Shown here piece by piece: positions 825 through 49,600 of a DNA stretch of 64,000 bases. Made by a program: the position numbers and the translations under genes. The notes below the pieces were generated by a model. The model was given only the letters and a program-made list of their open reading frames with translations, searched no databases and was not told where the DNA came from. Location of the stretch: contig MCFE01000394.1 of the NCBI GenBank assembly GCA_002104905.1, forward strand, positions 1 through 64,000, given 5' to 3'. Position 1 is the stretch's first letter. Every line of letters starts with the position of its first letter. This DNA comes from Basidiobolus meristosporus CBS 931.73. Lineage: Eukaryota; Fungi; Basidiobolomycota.

Positions 825-1062
825 CTATTCATGTGCATAGGCCAGTTGTTTTATAAGAGTATTCCTTGACATCTGGCTGAGAATACCATCGATGTAGTGT
901 CGAATATTCTGCGCATCTTCTTCCCTATTGGACAAGAACTTCTTCACCACTAGGCCGCTTTGTGGGTTTCTATCGGAGATTTGTGCTTGACGCATCCACG
1001 GGACTTCCAAAGACACTGGCGACCATTAGTAGAGCACAAGCTGCGGTAAGTTGCTTGTACAT
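825..1062 (-). pseudogene. Family A copy 1 (GYRW prepro-peptide), frameshifted and 3'-truncated
   Basis: ATG at 1062 reads MYKQLTAACALLMVASVFGSPVDASSTNLR* because of a 17-bp deletion. The other frame continues SDRNPQSGLVVKKFLSNREEDAQNIRHYIDGILSQMSRNT and then loses the Gly-rich tail. TATA-like TATATAAAT at 1082-1090. Confidence 0.9.
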
Positions 1063-1201
1063 TGTGAATGCTGAACACTCGATTTATATACTAAACCAGG
1101 TTAATAGACATTGCATTTACGACACTTCGCAGAATTGATGGGTTTCAATCGAATCTATGTTACAAGCATTAGGAAGAAACTATCAGAGCTTCTAGCTTTG
1201 T

Positions 1202-1293
1202 GCTTGAGGAACTATGAAAACTGCAGCTTGAGGAACTATGAAAACTGCAGCTTGAGGAACTATAAAAACTGCAGCTTGATGAACTATACAAAC
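1202..1293. repeat. 24-bp tandem repeat, about 3.8 units (GCTTGAGGAACTATGAAAACTGCA)
   Basis: Units start at 1202, 1226, 1250 and 1274 (last one partial and degenerate). Confidence 0.95.
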
Positions 1294-1404
1294 ATCACCG
1301 AGTGGCTTCTGTTAATTACAATGAGGCTTAGTATGGGGCGTTGCCTATTGAAAGTATGAAGTTGAGCATGAAACATTGACAATGTGATGTTTATTTAAGG
1401 TAAG

Positions 1405-1480
1405 GATGTGGTGAATTACCCAGAAACGTAGCGTCCTAATCTCCTTCCGTTGCTGCCATCAGAGTCGGTGTCTTCAGGAA
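1405..1480 (-). pseudogene. Heavily deleted remnant of a copy-3-like family A gene
   Basis: GTAAGGATGTGGTG and CAGAGTCGGTGTCTTCA match the 3' flank and pro-region of the gene at 3702-4121. Confidence 0.5.
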
Positions 1481-2393
1481 TGGAATGATGATGGAGCTTG
1501 ATAAACCTATCTAGTTACATCCAACTCCATTATTTATTCCTAGCCGGTTATTCATGCCACAGCACGCCCTGAAGTATATATGGAGTCAGTGTATAGCTCA
1601 GCTGAACGGTGGTATACGAAATATAAAGATTATTGTACTTCTGTACTTATATAATATATTCCCTTGTAGTGCATATAGTTCGTTTGATATTTGTATAGGC
1701 TGGTTCAAGCATTGAAGGATTCTTATCAAACAACGTCCATTTATTGCATCAAGTGAACATTTTTAGTTGTATAGTCTCATTTGTGAATATCTCCAATGAG
1801 TTGTAGCAAGCGTGTTCAAATATTGTAGAAAACATATACCTTTGAAACCTTATGATCTTCTATACACCAGAGATATGATGGTGTAAGTGTCAGTCAGTGA
1901 TCAGAGTGTAAGTAATAACTTGACTAGTAGCTTGATGTGATAAATACTTCATCATGAGTGTATTTATCTACCATAGCCGTCATGGTTAGATACACTCCAC
2001 AAAGCTCAGATGGTCACACGGTCTTGTCTTGGTCAAAATCCGTGTTTGAGGCAGACGTTTTTGAATCAGAATCCTCGTATGAAAGGCTTATCTACGCATC
2101 AACGGGGCATCAACGGGGCATCATCTTTCACCACCACTATCAGTTATATGCCCAACGGTAAGACTATAGAGATTTCAGTGAGTTATTTCACTCTACGATT
2201 ATATGCATGCATTCAATCAAAGCAACTATGCCATTTGTTTACGTATCGAAACCCAAGCCACACACACTATAACAAGTCATACACACGATAAAGTTGTATA
2301 TTATTCCCCTTCATTATCTTAGTAACTCTGCTTATCCCCTTATGGCTCTACACAATCTTCTTTAATATTCAATTCAACGGTGAAGTACTCACA

Positions 2394-2651
2394 ATACGAC
2401 TCAATACCGTTCTCTCCTCCTTAAACATGGTACTGCCAACCTGCGTATCAACCTTGGCTCATGGCAACACGTGACTGCCGGGCCATTGGATATTGTAAGC
2501 ATAACTCCCGGACCACCCGGCACCTCCGCCAAAGCAATCCTGTACCTTTCTGTGCAAGATTGCAACAGGAAAAGGACCAGGTTTGCTGCGATTACCTCGA
2601 AACTACGGAAAAGAAGTGACCGTTGGAGCAGTGAGAGTCTCTGCTAACTAG
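2394..2651 (+). pseudogene. Family C copy 1 (secreted 2-Cys protein), start lost and frameshifted
   Basis: ATG changed to ATA at 2394. Carries the same 146-bp deletion as the copies at 6443 and 9214, plus a further internal deletion. Ends GKEVTVGAVRVSAN-TAG. Confidence 0.85.
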
Positions 2652-2776
2652 CATTCTCAATAAGAGTCATAATCACATGGCCATTCACTATCAATAGATA
2701 AAATGCAACGGTACTTTATTCAAGCACACAGACAAGCTGTGTTGTTGGAGTGAATGAAAACCTTGATTGTTATTAT

Positions 2777-3226
2777 TTAGCAACCCCAGTCGCATCCACC
2801 ATACCCTCCATATCCCCCATAGCGTCCGTATCCCCACCGACCTCCATAACCACCGTAGCGACCGTAACCTCCTCGTCCCCAGTATCTGCCCCTCCGCCGC
2901 CCATATCCACCGTATCTCCCCCATAGCTGGGCCTCTTCAGGATTACCTTCCTCTTCCTCGACTCCTTGGTCGGCGCCTTGCTTGCTCGAGATAGTCTGAT
3001 CAAACGTATTCCTCGACATCTGGCCGAGAATGCCATCGATGTAGTGTCGAATATTCTGCGCATCCTCTTCCCTGTTGGACGAGAACTTCTTCACCATTTG
3101 ACCGCTTTGCGGGTTCTTATCGGAGATGGATGCGCTCGCTACATTTGTGCTTGACACATCTACGGGACTTCCAAAGGCACTAACGACCATTAGTAGAGCA
3201 CAAGCTGCGGTAAGTTGTTTGTACAT
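2777..3226 (-). CDS. Family A copy 2: 149-aa secreted prepro-peptide with a Gly/Arg/Tyr/Trp-rich C-terminal tail
   Basis: Intact ORF from MYKQ at 3226; this start aligns with all paralogues, so the longer ORF-track start is unlikely. Signal peptide MYKQLTAACALLMVVSAFG|SPV, acidic spacer EEEEGNPEEAQL, tail ending GGCDWGC. TATA box upstream. Confidence 0.92.
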   Translation of the reverse strand: MYKQLTAACALLMVVSAFGSPVDVSSTNVASASISDKNPQSGQMVKKFSSNREEDAQNIRHYIDGILGQMSRNTFDQTISSKQGADQGVEEEEGNPEEAQLWGRYGGYGRRRGRYWGRGGYGRYGGYGGRWGYGRYGGYGGYGGCDWGC

Positions 3227-3264
3227 TGTGAATGTTGAATACTCCAATAAAGCTCGGCACCAGC

Positions 3265-3273
3265 CTTTATATA
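3265..3273 (-). promoter_or_regulatory. TATA box of family A copy 2
   Basis: TATATAAAG about 40 nt upstream of the ATG; same motif at the same position in copy 4 (7337-7345) and copy 5 (near 10103-10111). Confidence 0.75.
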
Positions 3274-3457
3274 CAGGGACAGCTTTTGGCCAAGACGGAG
3301 GTTTATAGACATCACATCTAGGAAGCTTCGCGAAATTGATGGGTTTCGGACGAACGATATATTATATTTTGCATCTATTCTACAGGCATTAGGAAGATAC
3401 AATAAGAGCTTCTAGAGTAGTGTTATCATGCGAAAAAAAATGACTACTAACAGTACA

Positions 3458-3550
3458 CCATTAAAAGGTAAAAATTGACAGCATTGAAGGTAAAAATTGA
3501 CCGCATTTAAAGGTAAAGATTGGCACCATTTATGAAGATAATTGACAGCC
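3458..3550. repeat. Degenerate ~23-bp tandem repeat, about 4 units (CATT..AAGGTAAAAATTGAC)
   Basis: AAGGTAAAAATTGAC and variants recur at about 3465, 3487, 3510 and 3535. Confidence 0.85.
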
Positions 3551-3701
3551 AAACTGCAATAAGACTTATCTTTGCCTAGACATCCACCTTATCCATACAC
3601 ATATCCGACTTTCTCTCCATGCTGCAGCTTGGTAAACATCACTGATTAATTACGATGAGCATTGTCATTATGATGTTTATTAAAAGTAAGGATGTAGTGC
3701 A

Positions 3702-4121
3702 TTAGCAACCCCAGTCGCATCCACCATAGCCACCATATCCCCCGTAGCGCCCATATCCCCATCGGCCTCCGTAGCCACCATAGCGACCGTAACGTCCTCG
3801 TCCCCAGTATCTGCTTCCCCATCTTCCATAGCCACCATATCTACCCCAAAGCTCGGCCTCTTCAGAGTCAGTGTCTTCACTTGTAGGAGACGCTTGTTCA
3901 TCTGCCAACCCACCGCCTGACATTTGGCCGAATATGTCGTCAAGAATGGCGCGAGCATCTTCGTCTTTTGTGGACTGGAATTGTGTTATCATTTTGCCGC
4001 TTTGTGGGTCCCGGATGGAGATGGAAGCACTTGCTACATTGGTTGCTTCTGGCTGCACAGGGGTTGCCACCGCATATGAGGCAATTAGGAGAGCAAAGGT
4101 GACGGAGAAGTGCTTTTACAT
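3702..4121 (-). pseudogene. Family A copy 3: divergent paralogue with an in-frame stop at codon 2 (ATG TAA), otherwise intact
   Basis: ATG 4121-4119, TAA 4118-4116, then KHFSVTFALLIASYAVATPVQPEA... in frame with the 3702-4070 ORF. The last 36 aa are identical to copy 4. Could be a real nonsense allele or a sequencing error. Confidence 0.8.
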
Positions 4122-4399
4122 TGTGAATCTGAATGAAGCACTTGAGCTGATTATGAGTATATATACCCGCACAGCATTAAAGACACTCAACTTTACCTCT
4201 GCCTTCAGTGGGAAGCGCTGCGGGTGATCCATTTGGCTGTTCAATAGAAGCTGTTTAGTGGCTCTTCATTCAATCAAACACGCAATACACAACAAAAAGC
4301 TTAAAAAGATCATTTGTTTAGCAGATATGTTACAGGTTAGCCACCTCCATATTAACCATATGCTAATATTGATTGTGTGAACTTCCAGTTGCAGTCATC

Positions 4400-6050
4400 T
4401 CCATGTACCAATGTATCCTGTCACTGTAGCGTCATTATCCCTTTCTGTTGATGCCATAGATTCCTTTATATCTTCATATTTACTGAAGAATGGCATGATT
4501 GATGACATCTCTTGAGCCAACTCCAGCATTTATTCCCAGTCGGTTACACATACAGTTAACCTGCCGCAGTAAATCCTGAAGAATATACTTGGTCGGTGTA
4601 TGGTAAGCGGAATTAGTAAGCTCCAAGTTAGGCTGCGATAATATAAAAATTAGTGTACTTATCGAATATATTCTCAGTGCATATAGCTTGTTGTAAGTTC
4701 ATGCTAGCTGATATTGGAAGGGGCTGCGGTTCAAGCACTGAGAACTAGCTGCGATCATTATTACTAAATGACAACCATTGATTGCCTCAAGTATTCCATT
4801 TTCATTCTTAGTTGTACAGTATCTGTTGCAAATATCTTCAAATATTGGGATATTGTGGAGAATATAGGGTACTTGATAGTACAACACTGATTTAGAAGTG
4901 TCTAAAATGATGAAAGCAGAGGCCTATTACACCTGGGCAGCCTTTAAGCAACTTTCAATCATCAATTACATAAAGAACTGCTCACCAAGGAGTCGATGTA
5001 AGTTCAAAATCCCTACTGCAGGCTAACTCCAATAGCCAACAGTATGGATCAAGGAGCTATCAGCACCATTCTATATGCTATAAGATTATTTATTGCAAAA
5101 ACATGAGTTGGAATGCCGCCTAGAACAAGTTTACTGAGCTTATGTTTTACCAGTAGCTTTAGAGCAATGGAGAGTTCCTACTCTTGCTTATCAGTGTTCA
5201 AAATAACACCAAATTACTATATGAAGCAGAGTCCTATGCAGTACAGCTGTATATCTGGTAGCTACCTGCAGAGGGAGTACAAAGCAAGTCATGTGTTGGT
5301 ATTTGGCTTTCTGCAGAAGGCAATTATTGACAAGAAATAATGATTAAGCATGGCCTATTTATGCTAGTGTGCTGTAATCAGCTAAACAGTAGGAGCCTCT
5401 CTGAAAGACAGCTGGAGCACCGTACAAAGCATGCCAATGTCCCAGTATATTGAGACTTTAGCCATACCTGTGAAGGAAACTGTTCATAACAGCAAGTGCT
5501 GAGGCCACTGCACTGCTGTGGAGAATACTGAAGAGGTAATAATATTTTGAGTATGACTACAATAAACCTTATGATCGTCTATGTAAGTATCAGTAGGTAA
5601 TAACTTGGCAAGTGGAATGCTGCCAGCTTGATGTGATAGATGCTCCATCTTACCATCAGGCGCCAAAGTAAGTTTATTTATCTATCATAGCCATCATAGT
5701 TATCGAACAAACGCTCAAAAGATACTCTCCACAAAGCTCAGATGGTCATAAGATCTTATCCGTGCTGTGGGGCAGACGAGAGGTTGAATCAGAATCCTCG
5801 TATGGAAGCCGGTGAGGGACAGCCGTGGTAGGGAGTGATGGAGGTTCAATAGGACGTAATCCCCGTCTCTCATCGCGTATCTCCCCGGTTTTGTCCCCAC
5901 GTCTTTAGCAAAGTCTTCGAGAACCCCGACCTCGTGGAACCTTTCACTAAGCAATGATACTTACATTTCACTTGGGATAAATACCTAAGTAGGTAAAGCC
6001 TTTCACCTTATCCACGCATCAACCGGGCGTGTCTTTCACCACCACTATAA
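4400..6050 (-). pseudogene. Possible relic of an unidentified protein-coding gene (partial second copy at about 1600-2150)
   Basis: Broken ORF pieces (5715-5954, 5484-5666, 4699-4887) keep similar peptides in the 1.6-2.1 kb duplicate (FHTRILIQ...DHLSFVE; AING...QCLN...LYAL). No family recognised. Confidence 0.3.
4865..5530. mobile_element. CpG-poor insertion absent from the paralogous segment near 1830
   Basis: Similarity to 1600-1860 stops near 4865 and resumes near 5560. The insert has few CpG, and TGTGGAGAATA occurs near both ends. Confidence 0.35.
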
Positions 6051-6442
6051 GTAATGGAAAGGCTATAAAGATTCGTGTTTTGAATAGATTTCCACAAGAG
6101 CCAGTGAGTTCTTTCACTCTACGAATATATATGCATGCATTCGATCCGGTTTTATACTTACAGCGAATAGAAATTCAAGCCACGCACACTAAAACAAGCT
6201 ACTCATACTATAAAATTGTAGCGCCCGTACTTCACTTGACTTAAGCCTTATTATGTTACTAGTAGCAAGGAACGGGCTCGCTTGGCTAGAAACTGAAGTG
6301 AGGGTAATACACCCAGGAGTGATCAAATATTCCCCTTCATTGCCATGGTAACTCTGCCTATCTCTCCTTGCCTACCGTCCCTATCCCCTTAAAGCTCTAT
6401 ACAGTCCTCTTCAGTATCCAATTTAGTGGTGAAATACACACA

Positions 6443-6723
6443 ATGCGATTCAATACCCTTCTCTGCTCCTTAACTGTGGCACTGCTAACCCGCATACCAA
6501 CATCAGCTCATGTCAACACGTGACCTGCGAACCGGTAGATATCACAAGCATCACTTCCGGTCCACCCGGCACCTCCGCCAAAGTAATCCTGTACCCTTCC
6601 CTGCAAGATTGCAACCGTAAAAGGAACACGACTGCTACGATTACCTCTAAACAACTCGAGATATACATCGCGAAGTACGGAAAAGAAGTGACCGTTGGAG
6701 CAGTGAGAGTCTCTGCCAACTAG
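6443..6723 (+). pseudogene. Family C copy 2, frameshifted by a 146-bp deletion
   Basis: MRFNTLLCSLTVALLTRIPTSAHVNT*; the C-terminal ORF (6520-6723) is in another frame. Confidence 0.85.
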
Positions 6724-6848
6724 CATTCTCAATAAGAGTCATAATCACATGGCCATTCACTATCAACAGATAAAATGCAACGGTACTTTATTCAAGCACA
6801 CAGACAAGCTGTGTTGTTGGAGTGATTGAAAGCCTTGATTCTTATTAT

Positions 6849-7298
6849 TCAGCAACCCCAGTCGCATCCACCATACCCTCCATATCCCCCGTAGCGTCCA
6901 TATCCCCATCGACCTCCATAACCACCGTAGCGACCGTAGCGTCCTCGTCCCCAGTATCTGCCCCTCCGCCGCCCATATCCACCGTATCTCCCCCATAGCT
7001 GGGCCTCTTCAGGATTGCCCTCCTCTTCCTCGACATCTTGGTCGGCGTCTTGCTTATCTGAGAGGGTCTGATCGAACGTATTTCTTGACATCTGGCCGAG
7101 AATGCCATCGATGTAGTGTCGAATATTCTGCGCATCCTCTTCCTTGTTGGACGAGAACCTCTTCACCACTTGGCCACTTTGTGGATCCCTATCGGAGATG
7201 GATGCGCTCGCTACATTTGTGCTTGACACATCCACGGGACTTCCAAAGGCACTGACGACCATTAGTAGAGCACAAGCTGCGGTAAGTTGTTTGTACAT
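6849..7298 (-). CDS. Family A copy 4: intact 149-aa secreted GYRW prepro-peptide
   Basis: Full ORF with signal peptide, a KR dibasic site (VVKR|FSS), acidic spacer and tail WGRYGGYGRRRGRYWGRGRYGRYGGYGGRWGYGRYGGYGGYGGCDWGC. TATA box at 7337-7345. Confidence 0.93.
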   Translation of the reverse strand: MYKQLTAACALLMVVSAFGSPVDVSSTNVASASISDRDPQSGQVVKRFSSNKEEDAQNIRHYIDGILGQMSRNTFDQTLSDKQDADQDVEEEEGNPEEAQLWGRYGGYGRRRGRYWGRGRYGRYGGYGGRWGYGRYGGYGGYGGCDWGC

Positions 7299-7658
7299 TG
7301 TGAATGTTGAATACTCAAATAAAGCTCAGTACCAGTCTTTATATACAGATACAAGATGGAGGTTGATTGATATCGCATCTAGGAAGCTTCAGTCAAATGA
7401 TGTAGTATATTTTGGAGGCAACCACCGCAGCCAAAGTACAAACACTCGATTTCTGTTAACAACAACACTAGTCGTGGTATAGAGATTTCTATACTATGTT
7501 ATATGAAAGTGGCAAGTACTTATCTCGTAAACGGAAATGGGTAGATAAACAGCGAGAGCCTCAAAAGAGAGCCTCAAAAATTGCCATTTATTTTGCATGA
7601 TTTAGAGTTGTGGATGATCGCAATATTAGTAGTAAGCTTAACAGCATGATGTATTAAA

Positions 7659-7849
7659 TTAGCAGCTCAAGCAAACCCTCCAAGTTCCCAGCGACCATCG
7701 TAGTCCCCGAAGTGACCATAACGACCTCGTCACCTGCCCTCTCTGGTGCGAGCACCTTCTTCCTACACACCGTTTCCCGGCTTTGGAGAAGAGATGGATA
7801 CACTTGTCACATTAAGAAGTATTAGAACGATGGAAAAGTACTTGCGCAT
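7659..7849 (-). pseudogene. Family B copy 1 (degenerate relative of family A)
   Basis: MRKYFSIVLILLNVTSVSISSPKPGNGV*, followed by RGRYGHFGDYDGRW, which resembles the family A tail. Confidence 0.7.
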
Positions 7850-8410
7850 GGTGAACACCAAAGGATAAACGGAGCCTACTCTTGTGTATCTTTTACGTTA
7901 TCAATCCCATACTGGTCATCTTTTTCTTGGGCCACCACCATCTGATTCCTTCACAAGGAGATGAATGAGTGGGCTACGAGTGGGTAATACCTATGTGTAA
8001 CACTCAATACTAAGCATGCACTCAAAATTTAAAGCTGAAGTGTAACAGAAACTACAACGCTTTATTTACGCCTAGATCGCACTCACCATAATCGGTGTAA
8101 CGATACTAATGGAAGTGAGCAGGCAACGCATCCGTGCCACATATGCAAGCCAACACTAGTCATCCCAGTGTAATCGAACAATACAAGGAGCATTGCTTGA
8201 GTTAGATAGTTTCTCTAAAAAAAAAGTGCTTAGCCCAAAGCGAATTTGGAAATCTCGGAGTGAATACATTAGTACAGAATATTCCGCTTCATCATGGTGG
8301 CTCAGCCTGTCTCTCCTTACAAGCCGGGCTAATTTCCTATAAAATCGCTTACAATGCTCACCTTGTTCATCAGACGTACACACAGAAGCACACACACCGA
8401 GGCACACACA

Positions 8411-8837
8411 ATGCGATTCAGTACCGTTTTCTGCTCCTTGACCATGGCACTACTAGCCTGCACAACAACTTCAGCACAATCCTCTAGTGCGTTACTAAGT
8501 ATGTAATCAGTGTATAACTCAACTAGCCGCAACCAGTGAGCCTTACTAACCAAATACTTACAATATAGAATTGGTGAATACTCCTGAAGATACTGCACAG
8601 CAACTACCATTCTCAGCTGGCTCATGCCAACGCGTGACCTTTGGACCGGTGGATACTGCCAGCATCACCCCCGAATCACCCAGTACCTCTGCCCAAGCCA
8701 TCTTGTATCCTTCTCTGCAAGATTGTAACAATCGCAGGAACAGGATTGCTGCTATAACATCCAATCAACTCGAGGTACATATCGCGAAGAACGGAAAAGA
8801 AGTGACTGTTGGAGCAGTAAGAGTATCTGTCAGCTAG
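8411..8837 (+). CDS. Family C copy 3: intact two-exon gene for a 118-aa secreted protein with two mature-region Cys (exon 1 8411-8498, intron 8499-8568, exon 2 8569-8837)
   Basis: Exon 1 encodes MRFSTVFCSLTMALLACTTTSAQSSSALL. The 70-nt intron has a GTATGT donor, TACTAAC branch point (8544-8550) and TAG acceptor. Splicing joins in frame to KLVNTPEDTAQQLPFSAGSCQRV...QDCNN...GAVRVSVS*. Confidence 0.9.
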
Positions 8838-9213
8838 CATCCTCAATAAACCGCATTGTTCAGTCAGGAGTTACAAAGAATGCATCCCATTAGATATACA
8901 CAGCCAGAATGAAAGAGCAACTGTAACAGACTAGTGAACGAAAGCCTAGAATACGCCTACATATCATTATGATTATCCAGCAAAAGGTGAATGGAGTGTA
9001 TCCTCCGTAGCAACCGCAACGTCTTTGTGATACTAATAGCAAGGCACCGGCTCTCTTGGCTAGAAACTAAAGTAATGGTGATTCTTCCAATAATCAAATA
9101 TTCCCCTTCATTATCATGGTAACTCTGCCTGTCTCTCCTTGCCAACCGTTTCTATCCCCTTAAAGCTCTATACAGTCCTCTTCAGTATTCAATTCAGTGG
9201 TGAAACACACACA

Positions 9214-9494
9214 ATGCAATTCAAATCCGTTCTCTGCTCCTTAACCGTGGCACTGCTAACACACATATCAACCTTGGCTCATGCCAACACGTGATCTACG
9301 AACCGGTAGATACCGCAAGCATCACTTCCGGACCGCCCAGCACCTTCGCCAAAGCGATCCTGTACCCTTCTCTGCAAGATTGTAACAGGAAAAGGAACAG
9401 GATTGCTACGATTACCTCCAAACAACTCGAGATACACATCGCGAAGTACGGAAAAGAAGTGACCGTTGGAGCAGTGAGAGTTTCTGCCAGCTAG
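9214..9494 (+). pseudogene. Family C copy 4, frameshifted by the shared 146-bp deletion
   Basis: MQFKSVLCSLTVALLTHISTLAHANT*; the C-terminal ORF 9291-9494 is in another frame. Confidence 0.85.
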
Positions 9495-9631
9495 CACTCT
9501 CAATAAGAGTCATAATCACATGGCCATTCACTACCGATAGATAAAATGCAACGGTACTTTATTCAAGCACACAGACAAGCTGTGTTGTTGGAGTGAATGA
9601 AAGCCTTGATCCTTGTTATTAAGGAGTTTAC

Positions 9632-10064
9632 TCAGCAACCCCAGTCGCATCCACCGTACCCTCCATATCCCCCGTAGCGTCCATATCCCCACCGACCTCC
9701 ATAACCACCGTAGCGACCGTAACGTCCTCGTCCCCAGTATCTGCCCCTCCGCCGCCCATATCCGCCGCATCTCCCCCATAGCTCGGCCTCTTCAGGATTG
9801 CCCTCCTCTTCCTGGACTCCTTGGTCGGCATCTTGCTTATCCGAGAGGGTCTGATCGAACGTATTTCTTGACATCTGGCCGAGAATGCCATCAATATAGT
9901 GCCGAATATTCTGCGCATCCTCCTCCTTGTTGGACGAGAACCTCTTCACCACTTGGCCGCTTTGTGGATCCCTATCGGAGATTTGTGCTTGACACATCCA
10001 CAGGACTTCCAAAGGCACTGACGACCGTTAATAGAGCACAAGCTGCGGTAAGTTGTTTGTACAT
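9632..10064 (-). pseudogene. Family A copy 5, frameshifted by a 17-bp deletion
   Basis: 433 bp = 450 - 17. Reads MYKQLTAACALLTVVSAFGSPVDVSSTNLR*; the rest of the protein is intact in a shifted frame (one Tyr-to-Cys change in the tail). Confidence 0.9.
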
Positions 10065-10452
10065 TGTGAATGTTGAATACTCTAATAAAGCTCAGCACCA
10101 GCCTTTATATAAAGATACAGCATTTGGACAAGACGGAGGTTTATAGATATCGCATCTAGGAAGCTTCAGTCAAATGATGTAGTCTATTTCGGAGGCAACC
10201 ACCGCAGCTGAAGTATAAATACTCGATTTCTGTTTGCCTTCTACCGCAATAAACAACAATGCTAGTCATGGTATAAAGATGCCTATACTGTGTTTCATGA
10301 AAGTGGTAGGTACTTGTCTCATAACCGGAAATGGGTAGAAAAGTAGCGAGAGCCTCCAAAGAGTGCCGCAAAAATCGGCCTTTATTTTGCATGATTTATA
10401 GTTGTGTTTGATGACAGTATTAATAGTAAGCTTAACAGCATGATGTAATGGA

Positions 10453-10598
10453 TTAGCAGCTCAAACAAGAGAGCATCTTCTCTGGTTGGCTGGAACCTAC
10501 ACACCATTTCCCGGCTTTGGACAAGAGATGAACACACTTACCACATTGACTGTACCGGAATTTAAAAGCATAAGGACAATGGAAAAGTGCTTGCGCAT
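10453..10598 (-). pseudogene. Family B copy 2
   Basis: MRKHFSIVLMLLNSGTVNVVSVFISCPKPGNGV*; the Gly-rich part is deleted. Confidence 0.65.
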
Positions 10599-11119
10599 GG
10601 TGAATACCAAAGGATAGATGGAGCCTCCTCTTGTGTATCTTTTACGTTATCAATCCCATACTGGTCCTCTTTTTCTTTGACCACCACTATCTGTCTTCCT
10701 TCATCAGAAGATGAATGAGTGAGCTACAAATGGGCAATACTAAGCATGCTGAAGTGTAGCAGAAACCACATCACTTTATTTAAGCCTAAATTGCACTCAC
10801 CATATTTGGCGTTACGATACTAATGGAAGTGAGGAGGCAACACATCCGTGCCACATATCATCCGTGCCACATATGCAGGCCAACACTAGTCATCCTGGTG
10901 CAATCGAACAATACAAGGATCATCACTTGAGTTCACTAGTTTCTCCTTAAAAATAAAGTGCTTAGCGCAAAGCGAATTTGGCGAATATTCCGCTTCAGCA
11001 TCATGGTAGCTCAGCCTGTTTTTCCTTACGAGCCGGGCTAATTCCATATAAAATCGCATGTAATGTTCACCTTATTCATCAGGCATACATACAAAAGCAC
11101 ACACACAGAAGCACACACA

Positions 11120-11245
11120 ATGCGATTCAGTACCGTTTTCTGCTCCTTGGTCATGGCACTACTTGCCTGCATGTCAACTTCAGCACAATCCTCTGGTGCA
11201 CTACTAAGTATGTAACCAGTATATAACTCCACAAGTCGCAGCTAA
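11120..11245 (+). pseudogene. Family C copy 5: exon 1 and intron start only
   Basis: Exon 1 at 11120-11207 with GTATGT donor at 11208. Similarity to copy 3 ends inside the intron, where another duplicated block begins. Confidence 0.8.
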
Positions 11246-11554
11246 AGCGACCATTATGTTGTGGTAAGTTCACGAATTAGATCAGAATTTTGACTGTTGT
11301 TTCTTATCAATAGGATTCAAGTACAGCCCAACTATGATGTTGAATCAATTGTGGCTGAGTCGTCATACTATTTAATCGCTATATTGTGACACTTAAGTTG
11401 CATCTATCTATACACACTATGTGTACACACTATCTATACGTATTACAGATTAAGCTACCCGAGAATGCCTTATACCTCGCTGGGCACGCACCTTCATAAC
11501 ACTTTGTGAATTCTGAAAAACACAACGCTGTTCCTTCTGCAACAGGATGTTTAT

Positions 11555-11821
11555 TCATTCGCCCAAGCCAGCTTGGGATGTGCTAGCTTTAGGTTCAAAC
11601 ACAATGGCTGTCAAGGCTTCACAAGCAGGCGAAGTCTCCAGAGGCTCGTCTATATTCCTACGCATAGCTGGCTTCCCTTTAAACTTTGCTACTACTTCGC
11701 CATTCTCCATCGTTAGCTCCTGCAGCCCATGTGTTGCTGAGAATACCTCGCACACCACGCGAAGAACCAGCATGGCTCTTTCTCTATAGATACGGTCCTG
11801 GGCTTGCACCATGGTTTGCAT
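11555..11821 (-). other. Duplicated ORF of unknown function (paralogue at 14931-15338), possibly a gene fragment
   Basis: MQTMVQAQDRIYRERAMLVLRVVCEVFSATH is shared by both copies; the frames diverge at the C-terminus. No family recognised. Confidence 0.3.
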
Positions 11822-12905
11822 AACAATGTCAAGCCATTGTCCCTTTATAGCGAAAACTTCACTCCAATATGATCAGATGATGGCTCGAACAATGGCCCTT
11901 TGTAAGTTCAATTAAAACTGGATTTCAACCATTGTTTCAACCATTGTTTAGTATTGATAATATGCCAACAACGATATGAGGCAATCCCGTTCAAGTTACA
12001 TGCCAAGCAATGATGATGCTGAATTTTATTTATATAGCTTGAGCCAATTGGGGCGTGGGAGCTGAGTCACCGTTCTGTTGGAGAGGGGCTTGCTGTTGTG
12101 AACAGAACGATGAGTTGACAGTAAATTGAGAATATTGAATGCTCGACATTAGCTAATATACATGGCTAATTGATATGCAGTCAAATGATGTAGTACATTT
12201 CAGAAACAACCACTGCACAAACACTCGCTCATGAAAACAAATCACAATGCAAGTCGAGCAAAGAGATTCCTATATTAAATCAAGTCGAGCAAAGAGATTT
12301 CTAACAACTACCATGGCCCTTCATCACACTATGCATGCATTCAATCCGGCCTAACATTTATGGTTGTAAAGAAAGCGCAACTATATCACTTGATCTATGC
12401 TCACCATAGCACTAGTAAAGTCTTATCCGCAATGAGCAGACAGCATCAGTAGATACCCATAGCTAGTCACTCTTTCTTAGCCTGCGAGCCAACTCAAATT
12501 AGTATGTAGTCGATGTATAGCTTGACTGGACGTAACTAGTGACTGTTGATTGCTCGAATAAAGCTTAGCACTGTTTTCGGCCAAGTTGAGGTTGATTGAA
12601 ATCCCATCCATGAAACTTCTCGGAATTGGTGGGTTTCAGTCGAATGATGTTGTGTATTTTGGAGGCAAACACCGCAGCTAGCATACAGCCACTTTTCCTT
12701 CTGTCTTCCACAGCAATAAGCGACTAAGCTAGCCATAGCAGAGAGATTCTTGTGTGAAAATGTCGATTATTGCTCACGTAAACAAATACAAGTGGGCAAG
12801 CAGCAAAAGTCTGCATAAACGACACTAATTTAGCATCTCTTTAAAGCTGTAGAGGATGACATTATTGCAAGTAAGCTTAACAGTACAATATAGTAGGTTA
12901 GTAAT

Positions 12906-13171
12906 TCAAAAGCACCTAAAGTTGCATCCGCACCCTCCATATTTCCATCGACCACTATAGTACTCGTGACGTCGTCGCCACCAATATTTTCCCTGCCCTT
13001 TCCGCCACAAACGTCTTCATCCTTTGTTGGCTGGGTTCTATATATATCGTTCGGGCTTAGGGGAGGAGATGAAGGCGCTTGCCGCTTTGGTATCCGTTGG
13101 CTGCACCTGAATCCATACTAAAATATTCAGGCCATTAGGAACGCACGGACGATGGAAATATGTCTGTGTTT
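12906..13171 (-). pseudogene. Family B copy 3
   Basis: Start codon lost. VQPTDTKAASAFISSPKPERYI*, then a tail GQGKYWWRRRHEYYSGRWKYGGCGCNFRCF* homologous to the family A tail. Confidence 0.7.
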
Positions 13172-13827
13172 GATGAACACCAAAGAGATAAACGTGGCCT
13201 TTTGGTTTGGCTACGTAAAATAGCATAATAGAAAATAATGATGGAGCTTGATAAAACCTTTCATCCAAATACTGGCCATCTTCCTCTTCTACTACCATCA
13301 CCATTGGTAGGGTGCCCGTCTTTGCCTGGAGATGGCTCGAAATGCTACACGTGGTTGCTTGTGTGAATTTGAAAGCCTATTTGCAATAACCTCATATTAT
13401 CCTCCATTCTTATACCTCTATCAAGCCATGCATGCATTCAGTCAGGTTTAGCATTCGTAGCTGAAAAGGATGCACAACAACGTCACTTCATTTATGCCTG
13501 GAAGCTCTGATCGCACTCACCATCGCACCCCTATTCCACGTGATCAAAATCTTGTTATGGCGAATGTAATGGTCATGGTATTGGTAATGAGCAGGCTGCC
13601 ACAAATGCATGCCAACAGTAGTTACCCAACTACCAGAATGACCATAATGTAACTGAAACTACGTCACTTTATTTACACCTAGATTGCACTAACCATAGTG
13701 CCATAGCACCCATATTCCGTGTAACTCAAGTCTCATTACGATACTAATGCTGGTGAACAGGCAATGCACCTGAAGGCATTTCATCCTGGCGCCCCCTGTA
13801 TCGACAGAAGCATTGAAAAATACACGA

Positions 13828-14116
13828 TCATTGCTCAAATTCAATAGTTTCTCTGAAGAAATCAATGCCAATTTGGGTTGAATGTAATACTACGGTATAT
13901 AGTACAATATATTCCCATTCATCATCATTGCCCGAGAGAATCTGATCAAATGTATCCCTTGACATCTGGCTGAGAATACCATCAATATAGTGGTGATTAT
14001 TCTGCTCATCCTCTTCCTTGTTGGACGTTGGTGGGTCCCTGGCAGAGATGGACGTCACATCCAAAGCCCTTGGCAATCATTAGCAGAGCACAAGCTACGG
14101 GGAGTTGTCCACGCAT
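13828..14116 (-). pseudogene. Family A copy 6, degenerate and lacking the tail
   Basis: ATG at 14116 reads MRGQLPVACALLMIAKGFG; shifted frame gives SNKEEDEQNNHHYIDGILSQMSRDTFDQ. Confidence 0.8.
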
Positions 14117-14530: not shown

Positions 14531-16890
14531 ATCAGACTTTGTATGTAAGATTGACGATTGTTTCTTATTAATAGGATTCAAGCACACACCAGCTAACAGT
14601 ACTAACTATGCACTGATGATATTGAATCAATTGTGGCTGAGTTGTCACTCTATTTAATCGCTATTTTGTGGCAAGTTGCACCGGTCATGTGGTGCATCTA
14701 TACACACTATCTTTACTCACTATGTATACACAATACACACTATCTATACGTATTACATATATAGCCTTTTAAGCTACTCGAGCGTGCCCAAGAAGTCAAC
14801 AGTAGAGAGTGTGTTGTTTAGCGCCGAGTGTTGACTGGCTCTAATGGTTGTCAAAGTTTATGGAGCATTGCTGAACAACCTGTATCCCATTATAAGGCTG
14901 GAAAGCGCTGCTTTTGTTTTCACGGGTTAATTACCCCAAATTGGCTCGATTCTTCTCTATCAATACTTCTATATAACAAAAACTCAAAAATCCCTCTGTG
15001 TGATATACTCTGAGTAATTCAAATTCTATAAAACCCAACGCTGTTCCTTCTGCAATAGGATGTTTATTCACTCGCCACACCCATCTTCTAAACTTTGGAT
15101 GTGCTAGTTTTAGTATATAGATGGCTATCAAGGCTTCACAAGCAGGTGAAGTCTTCAGAGGCTTGTCTATATTCCCACGCATAACTGGCTTTCCTTTAAA
15201 CTTCACCGTTATTTCGCCATTCTCCATCGTTGGCTCCTGCAGCTCATGTGTTGCTGAGAATACCTCGCACACCACGCGAAGAACCAGCATGGCTCTTTCT
15301 CTATAGATACGGTCCTGGGCTTGCACCATGGTTTGCATAATAGTGGCAAGCCGTTGTTCCCTTATAGTCCAATATGATCAGATGACGGCTCGAACAATGG
15401 CCCTTTGTAAGTTCAATTAAAACTGGATTTCAACCATTGTTTCAACCATTGTTTAGTATTGATAATATGCCAACAACGATATGAGGCAATCCCGTTCAAG
15501 TTACATGCCAAGCAATGATGATGCTGAATTTTATTTATATAGCTTGAGCCAATTGGGGCGTGGGAGCTGAGTCACCGTTCTGTTGGAGAGGGGCTTGCTG
15601 TTGCGAACAGAACAGTGAGTTGACAGTAAATTGAGAATATTGAATGCTCGACATTAGCTAATATACATGGCTAATTGATATGCAGTCAAATGATGTAAAG
15701 AGATTTCTAACAACTACCATGGCCCTTCATCACACTATGCATGCATTCAATCCGGCCTAACATTTATGGTTGTAAAGAAAGCGCAACTATATCACTTGAT
15801 CTATGCTCACCATAGCACTAGTAAAGTCTTATTAGCAATGAGCAGACAGCATCAGTAGATACCCATAGCTAGTCACTCTTTCTTAGCCTGCGAGTCAACT
15901 CAAATTAGTATGTAGTCGATGTCTAGCTTGACTGGATGTAACTAGTGACTGTTGATTGCTTGAATAAAGCTTAGCACGGTTTTCGGCCAAGATGGAGGTT
16001 GATTGAAATCCCATCCATGAAACATCTCGGAATTGGTGGGTTTCAGTCGAATGATGTTGTGTATTTTGGAGGCAAACACCGCAGCTAGCATACAGCCACT
16101 TTTCCTTCTGTCTTCCACAGCAATAAGCAACTAAGCTAGCCATAGCAGAGGGATTCTTGTGTGAAAATGTTGAATATTGCTCACGTAAACAAATACAAGT
16201 GGGCAAGCAGCAAAAGTCTGCATAAACGACACTTATTTAGCATCTCTTTAAAGCTGTAGAGGATGACAATATTGCAAGTAAGCTTAACAGTACAATATAG
16301 TAGGTTAGTAATTCAAAACGCACCTATAATTCCATACAAATCCTCCATATTTCCATTGACCACTATGGCACTCGTGACGTCGTTGCCACCAATATTTGCC
16401 CTGCCCTTTCTGGCACAAGCGTCTTCATCCTTGGTTGGCTGGGTCCTATGTACATCTCTCAGGCTTTGAGGAAGAGATGAAGGCACTTGCCTCGTTGGTA
16501 TCCGTTGGCTGCACCTGAGTCCATACTAAAATATTCAGGCCATTAGGAACGCACAGATGATGGGAATATGCTTGTGTTTGGTGAGCGCCAAAGAGATAAA
16601 CGTAGCCTCTTGCTTTTGCTATGCGAAATTGCATAAAAGAAATTGAAGATGGAGCTTGATAAAACCTTTCATCCGATTCACCACATACTGGCCATCTTCC
16701 TCTCCTACTACCATCACCATTGGTAGGGTGCCTGTCTTTGTCTGGAGATGGATCGAAATGCTACACGTGGTTGCTTGTGTGAATTTGAAAGCTTATTTGC
16801 AATAGCCTCATATTATCCTCCATTCTTATGCCTCAATCAAGCCATGCATCCATTCAATCAGGTTTCGCATTTGTAGCTGAAAAGGATGAG
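14531..16890 (+). repeat. Second segmental duplication, unit 2
   Basis: Collinear with 11281-13470. Confidence 0.9.
16305..16580 (-). pseudogene. Family B copy 4
   Basis: VQPTDTNEASAFISSSKPERCT*, shifted-frame TQPTKDEDA (compare copy 3 QSTKDEDA), tail GQGKYWWQRRHECHSGQWKYGG. Confidence 0.7.
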
Positions 16891-17461
16891 CAGGCTGCCA
16901 CCTATGCATGCCAACAGTAGTTACCCAGCTGCCTTTCACTCTGGTAACTCCTTCATTGACCGAAGAATAGATAAAAACGATGGCAATACAATCATTGCTC
17001 AAATACAAGGTTTCTATTGCAAGGAACAAATGGCAATTTTGACCCTTTTCAAGAGTACTACACTATGGGATATAAAATACGGCGGCAACACGATCATCAC
17101 TCCAATATAATGGAACCACCGGATTCTCTTCAAAGGCGCAAGTCGTGATCAAGCCTAAAGCCAAATTTACACTCACCGGAGTGTACAAGTTACTGTGGCA
17201 TATAGTATAAAATATTTCCCTCCATATCCCCGATGATCTCCGCAGCCTCTGTAATGCCTATAACGTTTGTATCTCCAGTATCTTCCCCTCTATTGCCTGT
17301 CTCTCCAATACCTAGGCCTTTCAATCGCAGATACGGTGAGTTGTTTATGCATATCATATAGTCAAATTTGTGGAGGAAAAATAGCGGGATGCTTTATAGT
17401 GGAATCAGTTACGGGATGTTCTTGTGGTCAAGGTAGCTGGTCTTTGAAAATAGCATGGTGT

Positions 17462-17830
17462 AGGGGAAAAAGGGGAAGGGGGAAACGCTTGCCTCCTGTG
17501 TGTGCAATGGTGGTGGTCAAGTCACCACTGCGCCCACAAAAGCCAAACAGTAGAAGAAAGGGAAAAGGGAAACGCTTGCCTCCTGTGTGTGCAATGGTGT
17601 TGGTCAAGTCACCACTGCGCCCACAAAAGCCAAACAATAGAAGAAAGGGAAAAGGGAAACGCTTGCCTCCTGTGTGTACAATGGTGTTTGGTCAAGGCAC
17701 CACTGCATCCAAAGAAGTCAAATAAAAAGAAAAACGGAGAAGGGAAAAGGGAAAAAGGGAAATGCTTGCCTCCTATGTTTACAACGGTGGTTGACCAAGT
17801 CACCACTGTGCCCAAAGAAGCCAAACATGT
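17462..17830. repeat. 87-bp minisatellite, 4 units, each with an internal hairpin
   Basis: AAACGCTTGCC starts at 17483, 17570 and 17657, with a variant at 17760 (periods 87, 87, 103). Each unit contains a GTGGTG..CACCAC-type inverted repeat. Confidence 0.95.
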
Positions 17831-19799
17831 ACATGATGAGGGGGAGGAAAGTAAAGGAAAAGAAAGGTTGAGCACCAGTGGATGCATTGAGGATTGATCA
17901 AGTTCTCGACACACACCAAAGGAACCTAACCGTATATGTAAAGAGAAAAGGGAAGTGGCCTAGTGCCTGCTATAAAGGTTAATCACGCCCTCATAACAAT
18001 ACAACCAAGCCAAACTTGTAAACAGACGGGATAATGTGAAGAAAAACATGTATATTAATGGTTGATCAAGTCATCAACATACATTTACATAATAAAAGAA
18101 ATCCAGATCCTCCGCGCACACTACTGGTTGACCAAGTCATTAGCGCACTAGAAAGGGTCAAGAAGTACATGCTATTCTTACCAACCAGGCTAACCAACCA
18201 GGAGCAAGGCCTTGATCCCAAACAGCTATTGAGGCAATCCGGTATATGCAAATTCCGGTAAATTTGCTAATGGCTGGCCAAGCCACTATACGGACAGCTC
18301 AAGTGCCAGGCAGGTGCAGAGAAGTGCGGGTAGATGTATCAGCGGTGTTGTGGGCAGGCATGTAGGGGATAGTGAAGGTGAGCGGGTGGGTGTGTGGCAT
18401 TTATATAGTGTAGTTACCAATAAATTTAATTAAACAATGTTTAGATGACTGCCAAGATGATTTAATGGAATCTATTGATGTTGGAGTCTTTTCCCTTATC
18501 CAAACTATGGATATTGAACACATTTATTTTACAATTACAAGTGTTGACAATAGTGGCACGGATCTAGATGAAATCACTCATCTGATGGGTTTGAGTGCGG
18601 TGTTATAATAAGCAAGCTGGATTATAGATTAGATTACGCTCTTTGCTTAAGCACAATTAAATCACTGGCTTCTCTTTCTGGAGGTAAACATTCCTAAAAA
18701 TGGAAGAGTAGAGAATGTTGCAGCAGTAAGAATTTCTGTCCATAAACATTCTTAATAAATGACTAATACATGCCATGAAGCTAGGCACAAACTTCTGCAT
18801 TACTTAGTAACTTTGTTGGAGATGAATGTGCTTACTTCATATGTGCTTGAGGTATGCATGTTGCTGACAGCTGTTAGCTGAGCTTAAGCTCTAAAAGTTG
18901 CTAGCACATTAATAATATTGGACACTCTACTAAAGCTCAGCAATATCTCATAGAAATTGCCAGTTGGAGCTTTTTGATAGTATATTGATGTAGAGCAGGT
19001 CTTTTGAGCTTGACAGTGAGGACATTCAGACCTTAGTCTTTTGCTTACTCTCTCTGCTAGAAATCAGTAGCTTCAAGTGTTGATAAATCCCATATAGATG
19101 CACCTTTATTGGTATCAACTTATTAGTTAACTAGCTTTACCAAGTTTACAGCTTATGCGTAGTTCTACTTGGAGCCTCTAATATTGAGCATTCCTAACTC
19201 TGTTTACTTGTATGGCATTTGACATTTGCTGTTGTGCTTGAGTATTCAAGAAAACTCAAAAGTCATCCTAATATTGCAAGGAGCAAGTCTCACTGGAATT
19301 CTTTTTTAGCCATTGGGTGCCCCAGCTCTAAAATCTAATCATACAATTATTTAGCTTGTTTTTTGTGTTGTGTCTACTGGCCACAAAGCAGACAATATAA
19401 TGGGACCTCAGTATATCTGCAAAATTAGCTGAAAATAATCTGATCAGATGGTGCATTGCACTTTATCTCTAGGTCTCATTCATGCCCCCCATTTACTTGT
19501 GCTTAAAATGCAATCTCTTGGTGCTAACAAGTTCACTTTACCTTGAGAGCTATTAGTAGGGTGTACAATGCCATTTGGCTGCTTCTTCAGGTGCTTGGCA
19601 AGAAATTAATCTTTTGAGTATTGCCTATAGGTCAAGTCAGCCCAACATCTTAAGAATACCAAGCCTGGCCTGTGTAGCAGATATATTTCTTCAATCATAG
19701 TAGTAAATCCCAGTTAAACTCTGTTTTGATATTAGTCAGAATCCACGCTGCAGATATCTTCTTGATACTCCAACAGTTCTAAGAACCTTTGCTATACTC

Positions 19800-43200: not shown

Positions 43201-43827
43201 TTCTTCATCATCTATACCAGCATTAACGCTGTAGAGTTCTTCTGCAAGTGTCTCCATTCTGGTAATGAGTTGTAGCATGTCACCATCTGGCTTTGTCCTC
43301 AAGTTGGAGAACTTTTGTTTTAAGTAAAGCTTGCTTGATACTTACTTTACTCTAAAGATCTTCTGAGAGGATTCTCATGCTGCTTTGGAAGTATTTGAGG
43401 CATTGATTTGCTGGTCAAAGTCATCTTTAGATTAGATGAAGGCAACAAGGGCTCATAACCTGTTGCAATTTAAGGAGTGATTTGGATACAAGGAACCTAA
43501 CAAGAGATAGTGATAGTAGTTGAATTCTTGTTTATTAATAAGGAAGCTCAGTATTTATACCTTTGTAGAAGAAATATAGCTATAACACTAAGTAACAATG
43601 GTTTCTCAGTATTCAGGAGCATTCTGTAACAGTTTCAGGGTTTATACATAATGTTAAGTAATGGTGCTAATTTGATCATGACTATAGGAGAGTAATCAAA
43701 GCATCATAGATCTGAAAAAGTGGCAAAGTTAGAGCTGTAAATAAGTCACACAGTGACCAAGACTATCCATAACTGTTAAGTAAACTTTTAGCCGCTGAAT
43801 GATGCCAAATAGTCCAATATTTCAACA
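40232..43827 (-). mobile_element. Ty1/copia LTR retrotransposon, internally deleted and inactivated
   Basis: LTRs at 40232-40600 and 43461-43827. PBS GGTTATGAGCCC (43449-43460); PPT TTGAGGGAGAG (40601-40611). Gag (SLPDKYE, CNYCIKPGHWAREC), RT ([19 protein letters not shown]) and RNase H (GYSDSDWG, ALSTTEAEY, KDNQS, KMVADILT). Flanks CTTAC and CTTGT match only partly. Confidence 0.95.
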
Positions 43828-49500: not shown

Positions 49501-49600
49501 CTGATGTCTTACCAATACAAGAACAAGTTGACAACTCAACTGGGTGCATGAATCAGATTGGCCTAGAGTATTAACAAAGTAATTGGAGAGCCAAGCTGTT
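46500..49600 (+). mobile_element. Ty3/gypsy LTR retrotransposon copy 1, degenerate and 3'-truncated
   Basis: Partial LTR ending TGTAACA at 46670; PBS TGGTAGCA; gag (WHFQIEEAF, YLVDAAL); RT (NAPAIF, VYLDDLLIYS); RNase H (LFTDASDYAIG, TDH). Confidence 0.93.

Follow-up and report, generated by a model that had tools for sequence, protein, structure and literature searches.

The stretch analyzed here (the "window"; 64,000 nucleotides, positions 1 to 64,000 of the forward strand) comes from the fungus Basidiobolus meristosporus CBS 931.73 and has its start at the end of scaffold MCFE01000394.1. A small gene, designated "A", is present in six copies, placed by tblastn at positions 840–14116, all on the minus strand and within 13 kb. 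Judged from sequence, the best explanation for these genes is that they form a Basidiobolus-specific family of secreted prepro-peptides. A preliminary description of this DNA had counted at least six A copies; tblastn places six, with the qualification that those at 2780–3226 and 6852–7298 alone are intact.

Copy 4 (label A4; 6849–7298, tblastn 6852–7298) is an intact single exon encoding 149 amino acids plus a stop. Its product (window protein P0024) is a letter-for-letter match to an annotated hypothetical protein of B. meristosporus CBS 931.73 and to a JGI gene call. Copy 2 (label A1; 2777–3226, tail at 2780–2923) also encodes 149 amino acids and is 93% identical to copy 4. Copy 3 (label A2; 3702–4121, tblastn 3705–4121) represents a divergent subtype with a stop at codon 2 and is otherwise open for 139 codons; its tail (3705–3848) differs from that of copy 4 at three residues, and the subtype has intact counterparts elsewhere in the genome (P0003, L004:11423–11839). 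In copy 5 (9632–10064, tblastn 9635–10064), a frame-shifting short deletion after codon 28 splits the signal peptide from the rest, the tail (9635–9778) being intact; the JGI model of this copy begins at an internal methionine and is 121 amino acids long. Copies 1 and 6 were recovered by tblastn as fragments without a tail, copy 1 (840–1062) consisting of the signal peptide and part of the pro-region, frameshifted, and copy 6 (13921–14116) of a degenerate signal peptide and pro-region. The set comprises two intact copies, one with a stop at codon 2, one that is frameshifted and two tail-less fragments.

The product of copy 4 was divided into three parts. Residues 1–19 (7242–7298) read as a signal peptide with a basic n-region, a hydrophobic core of 14 residues and small residues at −3 and −1, and cleavage is predicted after A-F-G; the call was made from the n/h/c-region pattern and the −3/−1 rule (A-x-G | S) only. 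Residues 20–101 (6996–7241; 82 amino acids) form an acidic pro-region with 18 D/E and 7 K/R (9.06 kDa, isoelectric point (pI) 4.1, net charge −11.4 at pH 7). The tail, residues 102–149 (6852–6995; 48 amino acids), is 94% G/R/Y/W (21 G, 10 R, 10 Y, 4 W, 2 C and 1 D; 44% Gly) and ends in CDWGC, with a mass of 5476 Da, a pI of 10.2 and a net charge of +8.7. Spanning the border between the two is the motif P-E-E-A-Q-L-W-G-R (residues 96–104; 6987–7013), a candidate processing site. The tail has a weak 18-nt internal repeat, eight of its 10 tyrosines fall in one phase of a three-residue period, and it contains four YGGYG motifs, three of them directly preceded by Arg. The AF2 model (13-sequence alignment; pLDDT 47) shows a signal-peptide helix, a low-confidence helix at residues 52–85 and a tail predicted to be disordered (pLDDT ∼42). 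The counts given in the preliminary description (a 19-residue signal peptide, 18 D/E versus 7 K/R, the tail composition and the CDWGC end) were exact on recount. When all six frames of the 64-kb window were scanned for stop-free stretches of 48 amino acids with at least 40 G/R/Y/W, only the four tails were returned; the tail is therefore not a chance low-complexity open reading frame (ORF).

Selection was estimated by comparing copy 3 (A2) with copy 4 (A4). The two tails differ by 15 synonymous and three non-synonymous changes (dS 0.65, dN 0.028, dN/dS 0.04; binomial P = 2e-7 for the excess of synonymous change), and dN/dS for the tail ranges from 0.04 to 0.08 between copies, values that indicate strong purifying selection. 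Gene conversion does not account for the identity of the tails, because synonymous divergence is present. The pro-region (dN 0.40, dS saturated) is also constrained (synonymous excess P = 9e-5), with amino acids that change ∼14 times faster than those of the tail (Fisher P = 4e-10). By these comparisons the genes are real and under selection, and the layout of signal peptide, acidic pro-region and cationic tail in the preliminary description is borne out, with the tail as the constrained part. Note that the remaining two frames of the tail are likewise open and are used by several JGI models of frameshifted paralogues. These alternative frames (GADTGDEDVTV..., LRSLRWLW...) were considered as coding and rejected: synonymous changes in the G/R/Y frame alter them, and they are therefore not the selected ones. 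The models of the annotated paralogues P0002 and P0006–P0013 switch tail frame (...GADTGDEDVTVATVVMEV... or ...LRSLRWLWRS... ends) or splice into downstream DNA. They look like annotation artefacts of frameshifted copies, and the family is therefore under-recognized in public annotation.

Copy counts were taken from annotated proteins, four loci and read depth. Clustering at 90% identity gives 28 distinct sequences on at least 10 scaffolds, the annotated A-type proteins number ∼50 (sum of cluster sizes), and many intact 149-residue copies are spread across at least 10 scaffolds. Scaffold L004 has eight A-type matches within 13 kb, of which four are intact and about half are broken. DNA reads of B. 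meristosporus are 3–10 times deeper over A genes than over the spacers; reads that cover A genes and spacers alike are DNA and uninformative on expression. RNA-seq of CBS 931.73 exists (PMC7466969). The reads of another organism (X5) contain only pieces 90–95% similar to the A gene.

Relatives were sought with a word-indexed search of 5.8 billion proteins and an exhaustive phmmer search of 1.84 billion representatives. Both found credible relatives in Basidiobolus only. At E ≤ 1e-3, phmmer returned 14 matches; 10 are proteins of Basidiobolus, and four come from metagenomes or assemblies (ENA), their match being confined to the low-complexity part. No nematode protein matched at this threshold in the phmmer search, no mollusc protein was among the matches of either search, and no relative of the A protein was found in prokaryote genomes. 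The earlier comparison with mussel foot protein 3 (mfp-3) and with the nematode NLP and caenacin (CNC) peptides holds for composition only; no homologue was found outside Basidiobolus among the 1.84 billion representatives. Pfam, NCBIfam and PDB sequence searches with the A protein gave nothing significant. The Pfam family of plant glycine-rich proteins, PF07172 GRP, scored 12.9 bits (E 0.18) with copy 4 and 11.4 bits with copy 5, far below its gathering cut-off of 30 bits. Two paralogues carry the UniRef name "rSAM-associated Gly-rich repeat protein"; this was tried and rejected, no NCBIfam family being found at E ≤ 1 for copy 4 or P0003. Feature searches of the ESM Atlas reached no score of 0.9, the best being an oomycete "glycine-rich protein" cluster at 0.83. 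No description of such peptides in Basidiobolus was found in the literature.

Two weak phmmer matches (P0016, with E 7e-6 in the search of the whole library with the A protein, and P0018) led to two further scaffolds of the same genome, one with at least 12 tail-bearing copies in 16.7 kb (L002, 2233–15817) and one with five (L005, 974–7365). Their products have a similar signal peptide, an A-x-A-S-V-S motif, an acidic block and (D/N)PEEAEL followed directly by W. Their tails are of two kinds: the Trp ("W") tails are (WGRGR)n with five to eight WGRGR units (33–38 amino acids, +13 to +15), and the Phe ("F") tail at L005:6811–7365 is an RFG/RYG/RFGPF repeat (49 amino acids, +18), each tail being preceded by an acidic block and PEEAEL or EETEL. 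Using hhalign, the A alignment (A3) and the W/F alignment (A4) were matched at 99.5% probability (E 7e-23) over 132 collinear columns that run from signal peptide to tail, a score that is inflated by low complexity. Composition-adjusted BLASTP still matched two blocks in collinear order, that of the N-terminus at E 0.013 and that of the junction at E 4e-4. Common descent of the A, W and F families is the simplest reading, because collinear non-repetitive blocks persist even when low-complexity inflation is allowed for.

Membership of this superfamily was defined by a signal peptide, A-x-A-S-(V/I)-S, an acidic block, and P-E-E-A-(E/Q)-L, after which come W and a cationic tail of the Arg/aromatic/Gly kind; all 21 tail-bearing ORFs have these features (alignments A1, A3 and A4). 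The junction motif, aligned by hhalign, is present in each of the 21 listed, and columns E97, E98, L101, G103 and R104 of alignment A1 are nearly invariant. The preliminary description had placed a possible cleavage near EEAQL|WG, which proves to be the most conserved motif across the whole superfamily, or at KR in copy 4, which is unlikely to be a general site (KK in copy 1, TQ in copy 2). PEEA(E/Q)L, shared across the superfamily, is thus the foremost candidate for a processing signal, the KR of copy 4 lacking conservation. Charge is balanced in a similar way throughout: among the 21 ORFs, unbroken tails of +7 to +18 are offset by pre-tail net charges of −2 to −16, the sister families having tails of +13 to +18 versus pre-tails of −7 to −16. 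Recurrence of charge matching in such distantly related families fits the earlier idea of a near charge-matched, masking pro-region. Aligned with the W and F tails, the A tail retains the W and R positions that are conserved. Tyr is almost absent from those homologous tails, where Trp or Phe takes its place, and they are without the YGGYG motif; what is conserved in the tails is Arg plus an aromatic residue (Tyr, Trp or Phe) plus Gly, and not Tyr. Since sister tails swap Tyr for Trp or Phe, chemistry specific to Tyr is disfavored, which weakens the suggestion of a 3,4-dihydroxyphenylalanine (DOPA)- or dityrosine-forming peptide. Members of the W/F group have a second cationic module upstream, which is either K/H-rich or an amphipathic RRLNIGALIDRLL-type helix, again behind P-E-E-x-x-(L/R). 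The central helix of the A pro-region aligns with this module in hhalign, and the W/F members have the layout of a multi-peptide precursor. New to the present analysis are the selection test, the evidence that the Tyr-, Trp- and Phe-tailed families are homologous, the PEEA(E/Q)L junction common to them, the second module and the argument against Tyr-specific chemistry.

After each A gene comes, in convergent orientation, a copy of a second small gene for a secreted protein, designated "B" and unrelated to A. The intact subtype (8411–8837, plus strand) encodes 118 amino acids with two Cys in exons at 8411–8498 and 8569–8837, separated by a 70-nt intron (8499–8568) with GTATGT...TACTAAC...TAG signals. 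Its product is 95% identical to P0040 and 77% identical to P0042 of Basidiobolus ranarum, has no Pfam match and gives an AF2 pLDDT of 40; unconfirmed ESM Atlas leads (0.74–0.89) are to small beta-rich secreted proteins (beta/gamma-crystallin, MiAMP1, inhibitor I36-like). In a second subtype (6443–6723, plus strand, convergent with A copy 4), the ORF for the signal peptide and that for the body are in different frames, with a one-base overlap. This break recurs at 9214–9494 and in three copies on L004. Because at least five copies on two scaffolds share this break after the signal peptide, the second subtype, found beside A copies 4 and 5, is probably a co-amplified pseudogene lineage. A decayed B copy lies at 2471–2648 (plus strand), and B sequence is also present at 11120–11185 (plus strand). 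The "four B relatives" mentioned in the preliminary description are most likely four short remnants on the minus strand (7670–7849, 10500–10598, 12909–13079 and 16320–16496), which are present and not intact. They have a signal-peptide-like start, MRK(Y/H)FSIVL..., and an SSPKP motif; three of the four end R/Y/W/G- or Cys-rich, and all are broken by in-frame stops (two in the remnant at 7670–7849, which has an R/G/Y/W-rich end). The end peptide of one of the remnants recurs identically at L004:3085–3141. Splicing out of the breaks in the second-subtype B copies and in the short R/Y/W remnants was considered and rejected, the only GT..AG intervals being 27–35 nt versus the 70 nt of the B intron.

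The rest of the window consists of copia- and gypsy-type retroelement remnants and other repeats. Degenerate Ty1/copia-type ORFs (reverse transcriptase/RNase H, gag zinc knuckle) and Ty3/gypsy-type ORFs (reverse transcriptase, protease, gag) are located at 40595–43302 (minus strand) and 48640–54711, and the A array sits in a transposon-rich scaffold end. A direct repeat of ∼3.4–3.5 kb (11547–13472 and 15121–16888) has blocks that are 86–99% identical and a conserved minus-strand ORF (MQTMVQAQDRIYRERAMLVL...). A ∼100-nt tandem repeat at 17100–17900 has overlapping ORFs on opposite strands with reiterated KGKGKRLPPVCAMV / HCTHRRQAFPF units. Two 41-nt stretches (5428–5468 and 7390–7430) are the sole parts of 2200–7500 that match the contigs of two other organisms at 90%, and are probably short mobile-element fragments. 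As had been stated earlier, no tyrosinase or peptidase gene was seen among the ORFs of the window.

Of the functions considered for the A product, that of a secreted, cleaved, cationic membrane-active peptide of the antimicrobial type is the one we favor, giving it slightly less than an even chance. It is preferred over Tyr cross-linking because Arg, aromatic residues and Gly are conserved in the tails and Tyr is not. We infer secretion, cleavage at the junction, a disulfide within CDWGC and antimicrobial action, as follows. The signal peptide would take the protein into the endoplasmic reticulum, and the acidic pro-region (net ∼ −11) would neutralize the +9 tail in transit. A putative endoprotease would then cut PEEA(E/Q)L|WGR to release a disordered peptide of ∼5.5 kDa with a pI of ∼10, in which C-D-W-G-C may form a small disulfide loop. 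Once free, the peptide would act as a glycine-rich cationic peptide of the host-defence type, with Arg on anionic microbial surfaces and Trp/Tyr at the membrane interface, and its targets would be competitors present in dung and gut contents. Tandem amplification would serve dosage, with copies continually born and lost. The habitat of Basidiobolus is bacteria-dense gut contents and dung (PMC7466969, PMC10964425). B. meristosporus itself is known from the guts of amphibians and reptiles. Glycine-rich antimicrobial peptides (AMPs) are made with a signal peptide plus a pro-peptide plus a Gly-rich mature part (PMC11772090); taken as an operational class with this layout, >40% Gly and no stable structure, they include the copy 4 product (44% Gly, +8.7, pI 10.2, tail pLDDT ∼42).

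Comparison with known AMP systems gave likenesses in layout and composition. In precursors of defensins and of the frog dermaseptin type, an anionic propiece typically masks the cationic peptide. The prepropeptides of frog dermaseptins and alpha-defensins have the same order of signal peptide, acidic spacer and cationic peptide as the A product, in which the charges are −11 versus +9, and the W/F relatives have several cationic modules split by acidic spacers. Dermaseptin and defensin precursors are cut at KR or other basic sites, whereas the A junction is PEEA(E/Q)L|W. In composition, the W sister tails are a natural Arg/Trp repeat similar to the Trp/Arg-rich AMPs (indolicidin, tritrpticin, lactoferricin cores and synthetic (RW)n); Gly spacers and a length of 33–48 amino acids set the Basidiobolus tails apart from the classical members, which have 6–13. 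Trp/Arg-rich peptides are a classical AMP class.

The NLP-29 cluster and the caenacins of Caenorhabditis elegans likewise have a signal peptide and then a short Gly/Tyr/Arg/Trp-rich peptide with YGGYG repeats, and their genes are likewise tandemly amplified. They differ in having no sequence homology to the A protein, in not being known to have an acidic pro-region of 80 amino acids or a CDWGC end, and in their producer, which is an animal host and not a fungus. The Gly/Tyr-rich NLP/CNC clusters consist of AMP genes that have been amplified, a role against infection being proposed or shown; in vitro, NLP-31 has antifungal activity (PMC2453101, PMC11112505). Such peptides are marked by YGGYG/YGGWG repeats after the signal peptide (PMC11112505), and the A tail has four YGGYG. 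Positive selection has been reported for the nlp-29 cluster (PMC2453101), whereas purifying selection on the A tail is strong. The glycine-rich AMPs of arthropods (armadillidin, ctenidins, acanthoscurrins, serrulin) are linear and cationic with ∼45–70% Gly, aromatic and basic residues and short repeats; they have no defined secondary structure and are membrane-active at micromolar doses (PMC5031766, PMC6784228). Armadillidin, for example, has 47% Gly with aromatic and basic residues, and is unstructured yet membranolytic at micromolar doses (PMC5031766); the A tail is likewise predicted to be disordered. The layout of signal peptide, pro-peptide and Gly-rich part is shared with these arthropod precursors (PMC11772090), which have no homology to the A family. 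The repeat unit of armadillidin, GGGF(H/N)(R/S), is unlike the A tail, and no such arthropod-type AMPs have been reported from fungi.

Several observations weigh against a cleaved antimicrobial peptide. We know of no protease that cuts after Leu in such an acidic context, and no processing-enzyme gene was found near the A copies, half or more of which are broken. The tail is almost invariant, whereas the mature peptides of AMPs often diversify; such invariance is just as typical of proteins that are produced in bulk for structure or adhesion. B. ranarum P0017 is a homologue of the pro-region (∼40% identity) without a tail, in any downstream frame, so that the A "pro-region" may have a role of its own; the tail would be either an addition in the B. 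meristosporus lineage or a loss in B. ranarum. In addition, glues and cation-pi coacervates such as tick GRP77 follow the same Arg-aromatic-Gly grammar (PMC11772090). Note that the tail-less P0017 gene lies 1.5 kb from a gene with a Sulfotransfer_3 (PF13469) match, on B. ranarum contig JASJQH010008265.1, where L001:265–1679 (minus strand) adjoins L001:3185–3532 (plus strand). The Sulfotransfer_3 Pfam family includes tyrosylprotein sulfotransferases. This closeness may be coincidence, and no gene of the Sulfotransfer_3 type was seen in the B. meristosporus loci.

The same composition could make the product an adhesive or surface coat, with the Arg/aromatic/Gly tail acting by cation-pi interaction or complex coacervation, either cleaved or as an acidic-basic diblock, for example at the sticky tip of capilliconidia or in a hyphal or spore surface layer. 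We consider this function unlikely, if still to be weighed seriously. In mfp-3, cation-pi chemistry drives coacervation and adhesion. Like the A tail, mfp-3 and the tick cement glycine-rich proteins (GRPs; the GGY family and Tick-GRP77) are small, secreted, disordered and Gly/Tyr/Arg(/Trp)-rich, without homology to it. The A tail has a sticker-and-spacer composition (Arg and Tyr/Trp/Phe spaced by Gly), is predicted to be disordered and has two terminal Cys that could join chains, and, as is typical of proteins that serve as bulk material, it hardly varies in sequence and is encoded in many copies. However, known glues (mfp-3, mfp-5 and the tick GRPs) are not known to have a charge-matched acidic pro-region with a conserved junction, and mfp-3 depends on DOPA made by tyrosinase, for which no gene was seen in the window. 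The extra K/H-rich or amphipathic-helix modules of the W/F relatives look AMP-like, and glue at a tiny spore tip would hardly require dozens of genes. Cation-pi chemistry also drives coacervation and adhesion of tick glycine-rich proteins, GRP77 phase-separating into an adhesive solid (PMC11772090), and the Basidiobolaceae form adhesive capilliconidia (PMC13370150).

A structural wall or spore-coat protein, in which a Gly/Tyr matrix would be cross-linked through dityrosine or DOPA-quinone and disulfides in the manner of plant glycine-rich wall proteins, schistosome eggshell proteins or the high-Gly/Tyr proteins of hair, is improbable. The terminal Cys residues and the 10 Tyr per 48 residues, eight of them in a single three-residue phase, would suit such a matrix, and tandem amplification with many pseudogenes resembles chorion and keratin-associated arrays. 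The W and F tails, however, are almost free of Tyr, which excludes Tyr cross-linking as the conserved function. In a wall glycine-rich protein, a strongly cationic tail with a conserved acidic pro-region would also be unusual, and no oxidase gene was found in the window. The weak matches that point this way (Pfam GRP at E 0.18 and plant GRP clusters in the ESM Atlas) are sub-threshold, the former at 12.9 bits versus a cut-off of 30.

There is a slim chance that the tail is a source of small signalling peptides, cut after Arg (for example by gut trypsin) to give YGGYGR, YGGYGGR and YGGYGGYGGCDWGC, which could address the receptors of host, prey or grazing animals through an opioid-like YGGYG start. 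Of the four motifs in the tail, three begin right after Arg. In C. elegans, YGGYG peptides of NLP-24 are reported to activate NPR-17, and YGGYG the human mu and kappa opioid receptors (PMC11112505); the fungus inhabits animal guts (PMC7466969). Against this, the W and F tails are without the motif, chance alone would be expected to yield YGGYG in any repeat of Gly and Tyr, the units are not flanked by dibasic prohormone sites, and the YGG units are matched in conservation by the Trp residues and the CDWGC end. The narrower proposal of "exorphins" for a host or grazer, released by trypsin-like cuts after Arg in the gut as YGGYGR, YGGYGGR and YGGYGGYGG-CDWGC, is more improbable still. If it were true, the fungus could slow gut transit or alter the behavior of nematodes or insects, and the acidic pro-region would hold the precursor inert until digestion.

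As improbable as the last is the precursor of a peptide that is made by the ribosome and modified after translation (RiPP), the Tyr, Trp and Cys of the tail being cross-linked by dedicated enzymes. A leader-plus-core layout fits, the conserved junction could be a recognition site, and Tyr, Trp and Cys are favored for RiPP cross-links. Against these points, no UstYa/DUF3328, tyrosinase, P450 or radical SAM gene was found in the window or on L002, L004 and L005, the 48-residue Gly-rich core far exceeds fungal RiPP cores, and the "rSAM-associated" UniRef name was not reproduced by NCBIfam. The Kex2-processed repeat proteins (KEPs) are, like the A family, secreted fungal peptide precursors, and B. 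meristosporus CBS 931.73 has the most KEPs (43) among 1461 strains (PMC7329392), a count that also speaks for a RiPP. KEPs are recognized by repeated cores flanked by KR/RR, whereas the A junction is not dibasic and no cores recur between KR sites, KR itself being found once in copy 4, replaced by KK in copy 1 and absent from copy 2. Four family accessions (two A-type and two W-type) were not found in the supplements of PMC7329392, as far as these were available. Least probable of all is a decaying non-functional repeat, with the ORFs as relics of segmental duplication in a transposon-rich scaffold end: four of the six window copies and about half of those on L004 are broken, retroelement remnants lie around and many annotated paralogues are read in the wrong frame, but synonymous far exceeds non-synonymous change in both tail (P = 2e-7) and pro-region (P = 9e-5), and many intact 149-residue copies exist on at least 10 scaffolds.

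The A family is best described, from its sequences, as a glycine-rich cationic secreted peptide precursor in a fungus, with a new junction motif. PEEA(E/Q)L is a candidate for a new processing signal, unlike the usual Kex2 site. If the tails are released and active as cleaved cationic peptides, this would be, to our knowledge, the first family of glycine-rich Arg/aromatic host-defence-type peptides in a fungus, and the W sister family would parallel in nature the designed (RW)n antimicrobials. As for the producer, it belongs to the early-diverging fungi, lives amid dense gut bacteria and is known for unusual secondary metabolism. With A, W and F tails on one scaffold, the superfamily would offer a natural experiment as to which aromatic residue gives killing, sticking or phase separation.

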